This document shows positions 3,864-12,968 of a DNA stretch of 64,000 bases, one piece after another. The position numbers were made by a program, and so were the translations under genes. Positions within the stretch are counted from its first letter, which is position 1, and the number at the start of each line of letters is the position of its first letter. A model generated the notes under the pieces. It worked only from the letters and a program-made list of their open reading frames with translations, did no database searches and was not told the DNA's origin. Location: sequence record OM718002.1. One strand, given 5' to 3'.

Positions 3864-4232
3864 TTAATATCCTTCATTAAGTAGTTCTGCTAGAGCACGT
3901 GCCTGTGAAATATCAGTAGAAGCAAAAACATCAGAAAGATAGTTATCATGTTCTTTTGCATTCTGACGCAATTCATCCATTAGATGTTTATTAGATACCG
4001 CCCATACTTTCCACAGATTTTTATAATCATCATATTTGGGATTATACCCGTCTAGTGGTGGTTTTCCTTTACCAGCTTTCCAATGGTTGGAGTATATGCG
4101 ATATCCTTTACAATCTAACTGCCAAGCTTCCTCAATTGTTCTGCCATCAGGAAGCCTTGCGTAAAGAGCCGAGAATCTTTTGTCACCAACAGATGAACAT
4201 TCATATCCTCCTCGGCGCTTCCACTGATATAT
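3864..4232 (-). CDS. Uncalled 122-aa conserved phage protein with ATA start (or mutated ATG)
   Basis: Open frame (I/M)YQWKRRGGYECSSVGDKRFSALYARLPDGRTIEEAWQLDCKGY...SQARALAELLNEGY; first codon ATA overlaps the upstream TAA (TAATA instead of TAATG). Confidence 0.65.
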   Translation of the reverse strand: MYQWKRRGGYECSSVGDKRFSALYARLPDGRTIEEAWQLDCKGYRIYSNHWKAGKGKPPLDGYNPKYDDYKNLWKVWAVSNKHLMDELRQNAKEHDNYLSDVFASTDISQARALAELLNEGY

Positions 4233-6148
4233 TACTTTGGGTTCTTATAGGTATTAATAAACTTCTCTAGCAGGGTGTCCATTTTAGGAGCACCCATGAT
4301 CTTCTGTGTGATTTCAATAGCATTAACCCTACCACCTGTTAAGTTTACGCCAACTTCACGGCGATGGTGTTCACTAATTCCTTCCATCATTGAGAATTCC
4401 ATCACACATGTTTCACGTGCAATATTTAGAATCTGACTAACGTTAGGATATGTCGACACGATGTCAAGGTCGGCGATATGACAGAAGATTAAGGTTTTAT
4501 AATTCGGTAAATCTTTAACACACTGCAATCCATTTGGACCTGCCATGTATGATGGTAGTGTAACAATCCAATCATTATGGCCAATAACATATTGATCAAG
4601 TTCATGCACCATCTGATCTGAACTTGAACCAATGACACATGGCTCTGGTCTATTCAAATACCAGAAGTGCATATCGTCACATAGTCGTTTTGGGTTAGAA
4701 CTAAAGTTCTTATAGTCAGATGCCTTAGAGAATAGACTTATAGAGCGACCAAGGTCATTTACTTGTTCATCAAGTTGTTCTAGTCGAATGGAGTCGATGA
4801 TGTTATAAAGACCATATTTGATTTTATGCTTAGTCTGCATCTCACGGTGCCAATCGATACCACCAAGATGTGCAGTTTCTTTAAAGGTTAACTTACCAAA
4901 TTCCATTACATATCTAATAGAATCACCATAGGTAAAGTTATCATTTAATATAAAATCATCCACCGGTACCCATTCATTACTACCTACATTTTTAATATAT
5001 TTAGTAATAACGCCGCCTGGTCGGTCAACTAGTTGTTTATTAAAACCTTCAATAAAATCTTCTAAGTCCTTATCATTTTTAATGGTCGTGGATTTATCGA
5101 TGTTTAGTTCTTTTCTAAGAATAGACTCTAACCGATAGTTAGGATCACGTCCTTTAGCTAATCGAGTTACTCGATAAGTTGACATAGAATCGATACATTG
5201 AAAACTAGAGGGTGCTGTAATCCAATGCCATTGATCCTCCGGTCCTTTAGATTTAGTGACCCCAGATGCAGTGGTGGTCATAGGTTCGTCAATCTTAAAA
5301 TGGAAATACCTATAATTCTTAGGTACCGATGGATCAGAAAAAACATCAGCTGGATTAACGCCATAATGTTCTAATGTTTTTAAGATTCTGCCAATGTCGA
5401 AGCTAATATTCCAGAATGCGAAGAAATCTGGTTTCCAGATATGTAGTCGTTTAAAACATTCAATAATAATATCCACTGGTGTTTCAACAACCATTACTTC
5501 AATATCTAGACCACGTTCTTTAATTAGATGCGATAGCACCTCTTCTTTTTGTGCTTGTTCTAATGTCTCTTTCACTGGATCTTCAATATCACTAACCCAT
5601 CGTTTTAAATAGGCTAAGAAAGCTTTGTTCTTATGTGTAACTGACATACAGATAATCTGACCATCGTTCTCAGCTTCATAAACGTTGGTTTCGATGTCAC
5701 CGCCAGCAACAGTGTTTAGAGAGATTAGACCAGGATAACGTTCTTGATAATCATGCTTCAGATAACAGGTTGAACTAACATCACTGCCATATAGGTAAGG
5801 ACTACGCGCTAGTTGACGAAGAGATCTAGCCGAATAGTCACCTAGGATTTTACTAATCTTACGTTTCATGTCAATTTGAGTTGACATGTATTTAACTAAG
5901 TTACGCTCATATTCGTAATCTTTCTTTTCTTTATGGTTACGCATTCCTTTTGAGGTAATCCAAAAAGGACGCTGGTAGTTTTCCCACATCCTTAAATTAT
6001 TTGCAGTTGTACCATCTTCAAAATGAATTCGTTCTTTAACGAAATGCGCATCTGTAAACTTACCAAATTGATCAGTACAATAAGTAATATGTTTGGCTTC
6101 AATGCCCTTAATCTTTTTCTTATTTGTAACCTGTTGTTCATTAGACAT
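4232..6148 (-). CDS. Split B-family DNA polymerase, exonuclease plus motif A subunit (gp82-like)
   Basis: ExoI GDIET, ExoII WNISFD, ExoIII YNIID, and polymerase motif A DLDIVSTYP near the C-terminus. Confidence 0.85.
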   Translation of the reverse strand: MSNEQQVTNKKKIKGIEAKHITYCTDQFGKFTDAHFVKERIHFEDGTTANNLRMWENYQRPFWITSKGMRNHKEKKDYEYERNLVKYMSTQIDMKRKISKILGDYSARSLRQLARSPYLYGSDVSSTCYLKHDYQERYPGLISLNTVAGGDIETNVYEAENDGQIICMSVTHKNKAFLAYLKRWVSDIEDPVKETLEQAQKEEVLSHLIKERGLDIEVMVVETPVDIIIECFKRLHIWKPDFFAFWNISFDIGRILKTLEHYGVNPADVFSDPSVPKNYRYFHFKIDEPMTTTASGVTKSKGPEDQWHWITAPSSFQCIDSMSTYRVTRLAKGRDPNYRLESILRKELNIDKSTTIKNDKDLEDFIEGFNKQLVDRPGGVITKYIKNVGSNEWVPVDDFILNDNFTYGDSIRYVMEFGKLTFKETAHLGGIDWHREMQTKHKIKYGLYNIIDSIRLEQLDEQVNDLGRSISLFSKASDYKNFSSNPKRLCDDMHFWYLNRPEPCVIGSSSDQMVHELDQYVIGHNDWIVTLPSYMAGPNGLQCVKDLPNYKTLIFCHIADLDIVSTYPNVSQILNIARETCVMEFSMMEGISEHHRREVGVNLTGGRVNAIEITQKIMGAPKMDTLLEKFINTYKNPK

Positions 6149-10711: not shown

Positions 10712-12313
10712 ATGGCTACTGCTGACTTCGATAATGAGTACGATGATACTCCAGAAGAGAATTTACTAGATCAAATTGATGAGATCAATGCGCAACACGA
10801 TCCTGACTCTAGTATTGAAAATAATGACGAGGTGGAAACTCCACCTTTCGTTCCTGATCAAAAAGAAATTAAACTACGTATTCCACGTAATGCTAAAACT
10901 GGAAATATCCGGGATGCTTCTGAACCGGCTATTAAAGATAGTGCTAGCATTCTTACTTTACTACGTGAGAATCCCCAGACTGTTTATAATTTCCTGGATC
11001 ACAATAAAGAACTATTTAAAGCATTTGCTGATAATAAAGTAGATGACACTAGTGACGGTGTAAAGTGGACAGCTGCTATTCTGGAAGGCTTAGCTCACTC
11101 TATTGTTGAAGATTCACCAATTGGTGCAACTGCCCGAGAAGGTTCTGAATGGTCTAGTGAAATTCCTTATGGTGAAAAGATCATTCGACCTGGCCGACCT
11201 GTATTTAATACCAATGGTCGTAAAATGACCGATGATGAAACTCTAGTTTTCCTAACACGTAAAGCTAACATCGGTACGCCATATGATACTTTCCTACCTC
11301 ATTCAGGTATTTGGGTAAAACTACGTGCACCTACTGGTACTGAAGTAGCTGCCCTACAAGCACGTCTAGCACAATTAAAGATCCGGCTAGGCGCTGAATC
11401 AAAAGGTATGCTGTTCTCAAACATGGCAGCTGTGTTACTTAACATGGTTAGTAGTTTAGCACTTGCATGTGTTATTCAATCCAACTATAAGTTCAACACT
11501 CCAACTGACCTAGAGCATGTTATCTCAGTAGCTGATGAACCATTCTTACATCATGCACTAGCGGCGACTATGTATCCAGATGGATTTAATTATAGTTATC
11601 CATGCATTGCAGATGCCAATACATGTAACCATATTGAAACAGCGAAACTTAATATGTCAACGCTTGTTCAATATGATCTACTGGCATTCTCAGAAGAACA
11701 AAAGAAATATATTGCACGTAAGTTTAATGCATGTACTGAATCTGATCTTAAGACTTATAAAGAAGGATTCCGTATTGAAACTCAAGTAACTGAAATGTTT
11801 GGTGACGTTGGTGTTGTTCTTGAGATGTGTACAATTGCTGATCGCCGAGAGTCTGGTGATAGTTGGATTAACTCAATTATCGATATGACTCAAGGTAGTT
11901 TTAATGAACCAGTCGATGGTCCGCAACGTTCTCAGTATATTGCACGTTTACAAAAGATCTCTATTGCCCGTCAGTTCTCACATTTTGTTAAAGAAATTAA
12001 AGTACGTGAAGATGACGATGGTGAAAGTTCTGAAGACAATATTCGTACTGCAACCACTAATCGTGAAACTATTGAAAAGTTCTTAACTAATATTCTATCC
12101 ACACCGGAATATAATGACCGCTTTATTAATGCGGTGAGTAACTTCATTGATTCACAACTAATTGGAATGATTGCAATTACAAGTTGGAATTGTCCAGTAT
12201 GTGAGTCACCTGCTGCTACTAAATTTAAAGAACGTTTCCCACACTTAATCCCTATTGACATGCTGTCAACTTTTTTTACTTTGGCGGCCTCGAAGTCAAA
12301 CCGGATGGTGTAG
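10712..12313 (+). CDS. Baseplate hub / tail assembly chaperone-like protein (gp77-like, T4 gp26-like C-terminus)
   Basis: 533 aa, GGAG RBS, acidic N-terminus, C-terminal CPVC...IPID...TFF reminiscent of T4-like gp26 ends. Confidence 0.55.
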   Translation: MATADFDNEYDDTPEENLLDQIDEINAQHDPDSSIENNDEVETPPFVPDQKEIKLRIPRNAKTGNIRDASEPAIKDSASILTLLRENPQTVYNFLDHNKELFKAFADNKVDDTSDGVKWTAAILEGLAHSIVEDSPIGATAREGSEWSSEIPYGEKIIRPGRPVFNTNGRKMTDDETLVFLTRKANIGTPYDTFLPHSGIWVKLRAPTGTEVAALQARLAQLKIRLGAESKGMLFSNMAAVLLNMVSSLALACVIQSNYKFNTPTDLEHVISVADEPFLHHALAATMYPDGFNYSYPCIADANTCNHIETAKLNMSTLVQYDLLAFSEEQKKYIARKFNACTESDLKTYKEGFRIETQVTEMFGDVGVVLEMCTIADRRESGDSWINSIIDMTQGSFNEPVDGPQRSQYIARLQKISIARQFSHFVKEIKVREDDDGESSEDNIRTATTNRETIEKFLTNILSTPEYNDRFINAVSNFIDSQLIGMIAITSWNCPVCESPAATKFKERFPHLIPIDMLSTFFTLAASKSNRMV

Positions 12314-12774
12314 TTAATGATCTGAGATATAGTCGTCTTGAGGCCACTTTCAAGGAAGATAGTGGTCACATCCTACATCCAAACTTTGGTTATGATAAGT
12401 TAACTGAAGATGATACACACTTAGATAGACTATTATCGACAGTAGGGGCAGTAAGACCGTCTACAGCAGCACGTTTAACAAGAGAAGCATATCTACTTGA
12501 TTACGATATCGGTTCACCAGAAAACGGACCCATGTGGTTAAATAAGGTAAATCCTAAAGAGGACTTTATCGAAGGTGGGTTGAGAAGGAGACTGACTAGA
12601 GATTTCTTCAAGTATAAAGTAGGTAGCTTATCTAATATGTCATTAACTGAATTCTTTGAATTAGCTTATTCTGAGGTAGAATACATAATTGAATTATGTA
12701 GAAATATTACCCATAATGAAGCTGTTAATAACAATAACCAGTTAAATGAATTAAACAAGCCGTTAACTAAATAA
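12277..12774 (+). CDS. -1 frame extension of the upstream gene (gp76-like; T4 gp51-like C-terminus)
   Basis: Frame open from 12259 to 12774 with no ATG/GTG/TTG until 12532; begins at a T7 slippery site (12271-12277); ends with a SLTEFFELAYSEVEYIIEL motif. Confidence 0.65.
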   Translation, partial: YFGGLEVKPDGVVNDLRYSRLEATFKEDSGHILHPNFGYDKLTEDDTHLDRLLSTVGAVRPSTAARLTREAYLLDYDIGSPENGPMWLNKVNPKEDFIEGGLRRRLTRDFFKYKVGSLSNMSLTEFFELAYSEVEYIIELCRNITHNEAVNNNNQLNELNKPLTK

Positions 12775-12824
12775 AAAAAAATAAAGACAGGCCCCTCTCC
12801 ACATGGAGAGGGGTTTATGTCGCC

Positions 12825-12968
12825 TTACTTACGTGCAAAGCTAGCTACAAGACCTTTGATAGCTAGAGCGACCATCCAGGCCGTTAACCCCTTCATTGGG
12901 CGGATATCAACCCGTTCTTCGATATCCAGATTGCCCTCACTATTGATTACCTCAATTCGTACTTGCAT
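12825..12968 (-). CDS. Uncalled 47-aa small protein
   Basis: AAGGAG RBS, ATG, MQVRIEVINSEGNLDIEERVDIRPMKGLTAWMVALAIKGLVASFARK, followed by the hairpin terminator at 12791-12813. Confidence 0.7.
   Translation of the reverse strand: MQVRIEVINSEGNLDIEERVDIRPMKGLTAWMVALAIKGLVASFARK

Follow-up and report, generated by a model that had tools for sequence, protein, structure and literature searches.

Comparative evidence for a probable programmed -1 frameshift joining PHIKZ077 to the start-less PHIKZ076.4 frame in phiKZ-type jumbo phages and their distant relatives

A window of 64,000 nucleotides from sequence record OM718002.1 contains a gene of 533 amino acids (aa), the homolog of PHIKZ077 of phage phiKZ, whose end is overlapped by a second frame that lacks a start codon near its beginning and that is annotated in phiKZ from its last 80 codons only, as PHIKZ076.4. 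Comparison of this locus across relatives suggests that PHIKZ077 and the PHIKZ076.4 frame constitute one recoded gene that yields two products by programmed -1 frameshifting, a reading to which we assign a probability of about 85%. An initial examination of the window alone (the sequence-only reading) had proposed such a frameshift, and the proposal is strongly supported by the comparative evidence: the heptamer, its phase, and the upstream part of the -1 frame are kept across phiKZ relatives and beyond. The relatives share no conserved start codon and have not lost the heptamer, two outcomes that would have spoken against the proposal. No record of a PHIKZ077/PHIKZ076.4 frameshift was found in genome annotations or in the full-text literature. 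Recoding of this kind is already known; the present example of it is new, and its depth and spread are unusual.

The slip site, its phase and the open -1 frame can be read directly in the window, on the plus strand. Eleven codons before its stop, the 533-aa open reading frame (ORF; 10712-12313) reads ACT TTT TTT ACT (12269-12280), placing the heptamer T TTT TTT (12271-12277) in X XXY YYZ phase; its two phenylalanine codons specify residues 521 and 522, which are invariant in the family. The -1 frame, with a stop immediately upstream of 12259, is open from 12259 to 12774 and overlaps the zero frame at 12259-12313. Its first ATG, GTG or TTG is at 12532, 91 codons into the open frame, as the sequence-only reading had noted, and 85 codons after the slip site. 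The portion following the site (12277-12774; 165 codons and a stop) is homologous over its full length to the corresponding frame of relatives. It comprises 85 start-less codons (12277-12531), which encode the family-conserved residues H31, F37, G38, and Y72, and the only part that is publicly annotated (12532-12774; PHIKZ076.4, 80 aa, and shorter still in phage Churi). The predicted fusion of 522 and 165 residues correctly sums to 687 aa. The long stop-to-stop ORFs of the window contain 61 in-phase slippery heptamers, of which only two, including that at 12271-12277, open a -1 frame of more than 100 codons past the stop. The window has four other runs of seven or more T's. Further, 46 of 47 phiKZ-like genomes, each sequenced independently, show 99% identity or more over the 111 bases that surround the T run, which excludes a homopolymer sequencing error.

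In the mechanism that we propose, most ribosomes would follow the zero frame to the stop at 12311-12313 and release the 533-aa protein. A fraction would slip back one base with two tRNA-Phe on TTT TTT (12272-12277) and continue in the -1 frame from 12277, producing a 687-aa protein of about 77 kDa that would share the first 522 residues and carry a 165-residue, mostly helical extension. We infer, rather than observe, that the slippage takes place on the ribosome itself. Of the mechanisms that could serve all the loci described below, the simplest would be for tRNA-Phe to slip in tandem on TTT TTY.

Over the 2-kb region, the window matches Pseudomonas phage Churi at 100% identity and 46 further phiKZ-type genomes at 99-100%. 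PHIKZ077 is core gene cg18 of the Chimalliviridae, in which it is listed as "hypothetical protein" (PMC10299810 supplement). Every public annotation that we examined splits the locus into two genes, and the downstream gene is called in very different ways: the Churi record annotates only 45 codons of the -1 frame, two other records annotate nothing there, and across public records the downstream ORF ranges from 45 to 182 aa or is missed altogether. In Erwinia phage RAY, the annotated downstream gene (2419-2967 of the fetched locus) starts at an ATG 77 nt 5' of the T run and overlaps the upstream gene by 136 nt; the MadMel homolog is a companion case. Such inconsistent calls fit a gene that has no real start of its own.

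The zero-frame and -1-frame pieces were searched separately throughout. When used alone as a tblastn query, the -1-frame piece was found at 32-40% identity in phiPA3, 201phi2-1, Phabio, Psa21, PA1C, Noxifer, and others, and most of the matches begin at its very first residues, at the T run. All 12 named Pseudomonas loci carry N TTT TTY at the same codons, with seven T's in three of them, six in five, and five followed by C in four. In 11 of these 12 loci, the downstream gene occupies the -1 frame and overlaps the end of the PHIKZ077 homolog. Its first in-frame start varies in position, coinciding with the upstream stop in 201phi2-1 and coming as late as 73 codons past it in phiKZ, and conserved residues precede the annotated starts. 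In Pseudomonas phage RVTF4, the -1 frame closes after 58 codons and homology resumes in another frame, an extra frame break that reflects either a sequencing error or real decay.

We extended the comparison with a 20-homolog alignment of the PHIKZ077 family, which retrieved 71 IMG/VR loci at 23-100% identity; the junction was readable in 70. In total, the census comprised 59 distinct metagenomic loci and 22 named phages (the 12 of Pseudomonas type and 10 distant ones), with hosts in Pseudomonas, Escherichia, Erwinia, Salmonella, Serratia, Ralstonia, Vibrio, Aeromonas, Xanthomonas, Cronobacter, and Bacillus. A run of five to eight T's occupies the same codons in all 70 IMG/VR loci and in all 22 named phages, and a canonical, in-phase X XXY YYZ heptamer is present in 48 of the 70. 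The -1 frame is open for roughly 150-180 codons from the T run in every census member but one; among the 59 distinct loci it continues for 149-180 codons past the site (median 168), and the extension aligns as a single protein family with near-invariant positions 31, 37, 38, 72, 85, and 95 (window numbering). The ten distant phages, namely AgentSmith (Bacillus), SPN3US (Salmonella), PCH45 (Serratia), RSF1 (Ralstonia), Yong MS31 (Vibrio), D3 (Aeromonas), Xoo-sp14 (Xanthomonas), CR5 (Cronobacter), Goslar (Escherichia), and RAY (Erwinia), all have an in-phase T TTT TTY or T TTT TTA, followed by a -1 frame of 151-176 codons. The presence of both site and frame in these ten phages indicates that the arrangement predates the split of their lineages.

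That the -1 frame lacks a start, and that it is entered at or very near the T run, becomes apparent by comparison. No start codon for the -1 frame is conserved among the 59 distinct loci and 22 named phages, and the alignment columns reveal no shared start-codon column between the T run and the H/F-G motif. The first ATG, GTG or TTG lies beyond the invariant phenylalanine equivalent to F37 in 35 of the 59 loci, beyond the equivalent of Y72 in seven, and up to 136 codons into the frame. Stops in the -1 frame occur at 0.09 per codon upstream of the run, whereas none occurs for at least 140 codons after it in any of the 59 loci. The last upstream stop lies 0-13 nt before the run in 19/59 loci, and the overlap of 9-18 codons is free of -1-frame stops in 59/59 (chance about 1e-33 if the loci were independent). 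So sharp a boundary would pin entry into the -1 frame to the T run or to the few codons after it.

The T run is also constrained at the nucleotide level. Its first phenylalanine codon is TTT in 58/59 loci, compared with an average of 30% for phenylalanine codons elsewhere in the same genes; in several GC-rich genes, TTT accounts for 0 of the 14-24 phenylalanine codons found elsewhere. The codon at the second phenylalanine position is TTT or TTC, both read by tRNA-Phe, in 57/59 loci, and the base before the first TTT is T in 39/59, although T makes up only 28% of third positions. In the other 93.8 kb of these ORFs, just three runs reach six or more T's. As the loci are phylogenetically related, the joint probabilities (about 1e-48 and 1e-33) should be read as upper bounds on significance; even allowing for this kinship, the nucleotide-level pattern in the compared sequences is unambiguous.

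An in-frame fusion of the two parts was found neither among 20 upstream homologs (485-633 aa) nor among the best 150 of the 1230 downstream-domain clusters (80-303 aa) that a profile search recovered from 1.84 billion representatives. Many of these 150 representatives begin inside the profile, suggesting truncated gene calls of the kind that arise when gene callers take the first available methionine. Relatives of 686-687 aa among the predicted viral structures of BFVD were considered as C-terminal fusions and rejected, as they belong to an SPN3US-type subfamily that is extended at the N-terminus. Because neither in-frame fusions nor conserved starts were found, although a single-base change in the T run would suffice for a fusion and a start codon is easily gained, it would seem that both products, and probably their ratio, matter to the phage; a requirement for the two in a set ratio is thus our inference from this pattern, by the same reasoning that is classic for G/GT.

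We also looked for elements that might stimulate the shift, folding the window sequence, the 59 loci singly, and two alignable groups (by RNAalifold). The sequence-only reading had pointed to a weak hairpin after the site (TTTGGC/GTCAAA). This hairpin can form; however, it is no more stable than shuffled sequence (z-scores of +0.86 and -0.65), and it is not conserved. Individual subclades do have hairpins and, by eye, some distant loci have one that closes near the upstream stop, but a shared hairpin is unsupported by RNAalifold, which returned zero consensus pairs in the two alignable groups. A perfect 6-bp inverted repeat with a 3-nt loop (TTGACA/TGTCAA, 12255-12269) ends one base 5' of the T run. 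The phiKZ group has this repeat, 201phi2-1 and other relatives lack it, and an effect on slippage is possible. No terminator-like site was found between the two frames. The first one after the gene pair is a hairpin at 12792-12813, common to the convergent genes, and its position implies that both frames lie on one transcript.

Several observations weigh against a programmed frameshift. A conserved downstream stimulatory RNA structure was not found (folding z-scores average -0.4), nor did column counts in the alignment reveal an upstream Shine-Dalgarno-like element or G-rich block; the absence of conserved stimulators means that frameshift efficiency could be low or modest, and this is the main weakness of the proposal. 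In 22 of the 70 loci a base other than T precedes the phenylalanine codons, or the run has only five T's, so that re-pairing in the P site would be imperfect. Canonical starts lie close to the upstream stop in three phages (a TTG overlapping it in 201phi2-1, and an ATG eight codons after it in Psa21 and D6), making separate initiation possible in some phages. The kinship of the loci causes the computed joint probabilities to overstate independence, and the whole case for the frameshift is comparative, drawn here from sequences alone. Finally, the functional link discussed below draws on weak fold matches, finds no backing in any sequence family, and concerns a gene that lies outside a tail module.

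As a rival to ribosomal slippage, the phage RNA polymerase might insert an extra U at the T run in some of its transcripts, which would give the same long protein. The RNA polymerases of phiKZ-type phages are non-canonical and phage-encoded, the site is a homopolymer (seven T's in the window, and eight in 13/70 loci and in Goslar, RAY, and RSF1), and the missing RNA stimulator fits transcriptional slippage as well as it fits ribosomal slippage of low efficiency. Efficient transcriptional slippage in bacteria is known for runs of about 8-9, however, and the run has six T's in 25/70 loci and only five in 5/70, as well as in PA1C, PS119XW, and HPP-Temi. What is conserved is TTT TTY in a fixed phase, with T or C as its last base in 57/59 loci, which is the pattern that tRNA re-pairing, and not run length, would call for. 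The conserved codon pattern and phase, together with the five-T runs of several lineages, argue against transcriptional slippage as the general mechanism, and we consider it improbable, although it may operate in phages whose runs have seven or eight T's.

We judge it similarly improbable that the locus comprises two separate genes, with the downstream one starting at a near-cognate or otherwise unusual codon or by termination-reinitiation, and with the T run kept only for the two phenylalanines of the upstream protein. Phe521-Phe522 is indeed invariant and lies within a predicted C-terminal helix, the starts in 201phi2-1, Psa21, and D6 are suitably placed, public annotations all treat the pair as two genes, and an internal AUU start has been reported for T4 gene 26. 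Nevertheless, a need for Phe-Phe would explain neither the near-exclusive use of TTT at the first codon nor the stop-free -1 frame across the overlap, and the first canonical start falls past invariant residues in more than half of the distinct loci, with no start column shared before the H/F-G motif. An artifact or recent decay, in which a homopolymer error or a new frameshift has split one 687-codon gene, is consistent with homopolymer runs being the commonest place of indel errors and with the extra frame break in RVTF4. It is refuted by the distribution of the arrangement, and we give it almost no weight: the same frames are found in 47 phiKZ-like genomes sequenced over two decades, in 59/59 distinct loci, and in 22 named phages from at least 11 host genera, and an unsplit version is absent from the 20 upstream homologs and from the 150 best downstream clusters. 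Programmed ribosomal frameshifting is thus the reading that we prefer.

What the two products might do was approached through structure prediction and family searches. The AlphaFold model of PHIKZ077 is confident (predicted template-modeling score, pTM, 0.81). PHIKZ077 has no match in the PDB by fold or by sequence, and comparison with BFVD finds its own jumbo-phage homologs. Weaker BFVD matches are to models of 253-284 aa named "baseplate hub assembly protein, T4-like" or "baseplate hub assembly chaperone" (E values of 4.5e-4 to 6.5e-3), with template-modeling (TM) scores of 0.28-0.32 normalized to the query and 0.51-0.57 normalized to the target; fold matches named "tail assembly chaperone" appear only at E values of 0.47-1.9. 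No family named for gp26/gp51 or for tail assembly chaperones in Pfam, PHROG, NCBIfam or PDB matches either piece, and the gp26/gp51 family is absent from the Pfam and PHROG matches of 20 + 8 homologs even at E values up to 10. A tblastn search with the Bacillus-phage homolog likewise returned no T4-like phage among the matches listed. The downstream part is mostly helical and poorly modeled (predicted local distance difference test score, pLDDT, 64); fold and sequence searches with it re-find only uncharacterized jumbo-phage homologs, with no likeness to anything named. An internal duplication was rejected, as profile comparison shows the upstream and downstream parts to be unrelated.

Contextual evidence is of several kinds. 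Some depositors label homologs as baseplate or hub assembly proteins. In the 201phi2-1 record, the neighboring gp138 carries a virion mass-spectrometry note and gp135 and gp136 do not. In phiKZ, SPN3US, and others, the neighbors of the gene pair are gp78, gp79, the helicase gp75, and RNA polymerase subunits. PHIKZ077 and its phiPA3 homolog are present in the source data of a study of infected cells by size-exclusion chromatography and mass spectrometry, in which nothing bears on the -1 frame (PMC10449902 supplement). Both T4 gp26 and gp51 have been listed as chaperones of hub assembly, and particles lack gp51 (PMC3004832). The sequence-only reading had labeled PHIKZ077 a hub chaperone; the weak fold-level matches to T4-like hub assembly models lend this label some credit, and no sequence-family match was found. 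We therefore advance only tentatively, from the predicted models, the idea that the shared body might be distantly related in structure to the T4-type factors of baseplate hub assembly. It would assist assembly without entering the virion and would exist as two isoforms, of which the long one, as in lambda G/GT, would have an additional domain for binding a partner.

The nucleus-forming phage family has roughly 70 core genes, and PHIKZ077 is one of them (PMC10299810 supplement). If the frameshift is real, then every annotated genome of the group mis-states two genes, including those of the model phages phiKZ, phiPA3, 201phi2-1, Goslar, RAY, SPN3US, and PCH45, as well as those of therapeutic candidates, and proteomics, interaction mapping, and structure fitting all draw on databases that lack a product of about 77 kDa. 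The locus would also provide a natural U-run -1 frameshift site that has been kept from Pseudomonas to Bacillus hosts, across 33-63% GC, and a concrete handle on tail assembly in giant phages.

Other observations were made in and around the window. The 47-aa ORF on the minus strand at 12825-12968 is annotated as "baseplate hub protein" in Churi and as hypothetical (PHIKZ076.3) in phiKZ and other records; for a protein this small, the Churi label seems questionable. A partial protein of 96 aa, deposited as Klebsiella pneumoniae and encoded on a contig of 288 bases, is 90% identical to the downstream frame of the window and probably reflects carry-over from phage or Pseudomonas into a bacterial assembly.

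A second start-less frame lies elsewhere in the window. The 638-aa gene on the minus strand at 4232-6148 (PHIKZ082, annotated as DNA polymerase) has an in-phase C CCA AAG directly before its stop, and the -1 frame that follows (3864-4241, minus strand) spans 123 codons, of which only the last 38 are annotated (PHIKZ082.1). The whole of its 123-aa translation is conserved in relatives, and Achromobacter and Delftia phages have it as a stand-alone gene; in phiPA3, the homolog is annotated at full length with a canonical start. Upstream of phiPA3 gene 084 (1-303 of the fetched locus) no coding sequence is annotated on that strand, yet the DNA aligns to the 3' end of the phiKZ DNA polymerase gene and keeps the same heptamer and stop. 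The downstream frame of PHIKZ082 would need unusual initiation, reinitiation, or a -1 slip.

Set beside known systems, the proposed site resembles, in its mechanics, those of Escherichia coli dnaX (tau/gamma) and the IS3-family orfA/orfAB, in which bacterial-type tandem slippage on X XXY YYZ gives two products of a single gene in a set ratio. The dnaX and IS3 sites (A AAA AAG) are accompanied by an upstream Shine-Dalgarno-like element and a downstream hairpin or pseudoknot, whereas no stimulator was detected at the PHIKZ077 site, and in dnaX the shifted product is the shorter of the two, unlike that predicted here. The likeness to T4 gp26 and gp51 is of another kind: the predicted fold of PHIKZ077 weakly matches models named for T4-like hub assembly proteins or chaperones and, like gp51, the PHIKZ077 homolog is apparently not a virion component, judging from the 201phi2-1 record. 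The T4-like hub proteins, however, are half the size and have no known frameshift, a sequence-family match to them is absent, and the downstream domain has no named relative.

A close parallel in design is that with the tail assembly chaperones G/GT of lambda and E/E' of P2, which are described in PMC9024508, citing Xu, Hendrix and Duda (2004), as made by a conserved -1 frameshift. In these pairs, as would be the case for PHIKZ077, a -1 slip occurs a few codons before the upstream stop, the long product consists of the upstream body plus a start-less C-terminal domain, the arrangement is kept across very divergent phages, and the likely role is in virion assembly and not as part of the virion. 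The sequence-only reading had gone further and suggested that the pair might be the jumbo-phage equivalent of G/GT. Comparative evidence for a -1 frameshift near the 3' end that adds a second domain is in line with that suggestion, but family, gene size, fold, and genomic position all differ. The PHIKZ077 ORF encodes 533 aa, as opposed to about 100-150; neither sequence nor fold matches a tail-assembly-chaperone family; tail tube and tape measure genes do not flank the pair, whose neighbors are gp78/gp79, helicase, and RNA polymerase genes; and the slip site is a U run read by tRNA-Phe in place of the G GGA AAG of G/GT. Because the defining family and gene-position features of G/GT were tested and found to be absent, the likeness is, as far as these comparisons go, an analogy of logic and not family membership. 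A bolder and rather doubtful proposition is that the recoded pair is the long-missing G/GT counterpart for T4-type and giant contractile-tailed phages: a hub or tape-measure factor whose isoform ratio would be set by the U run, inherited from before the split between Gram-negative and Bacillus jumbo phages, with gp26 and gp51 as its un-recoded relatives.

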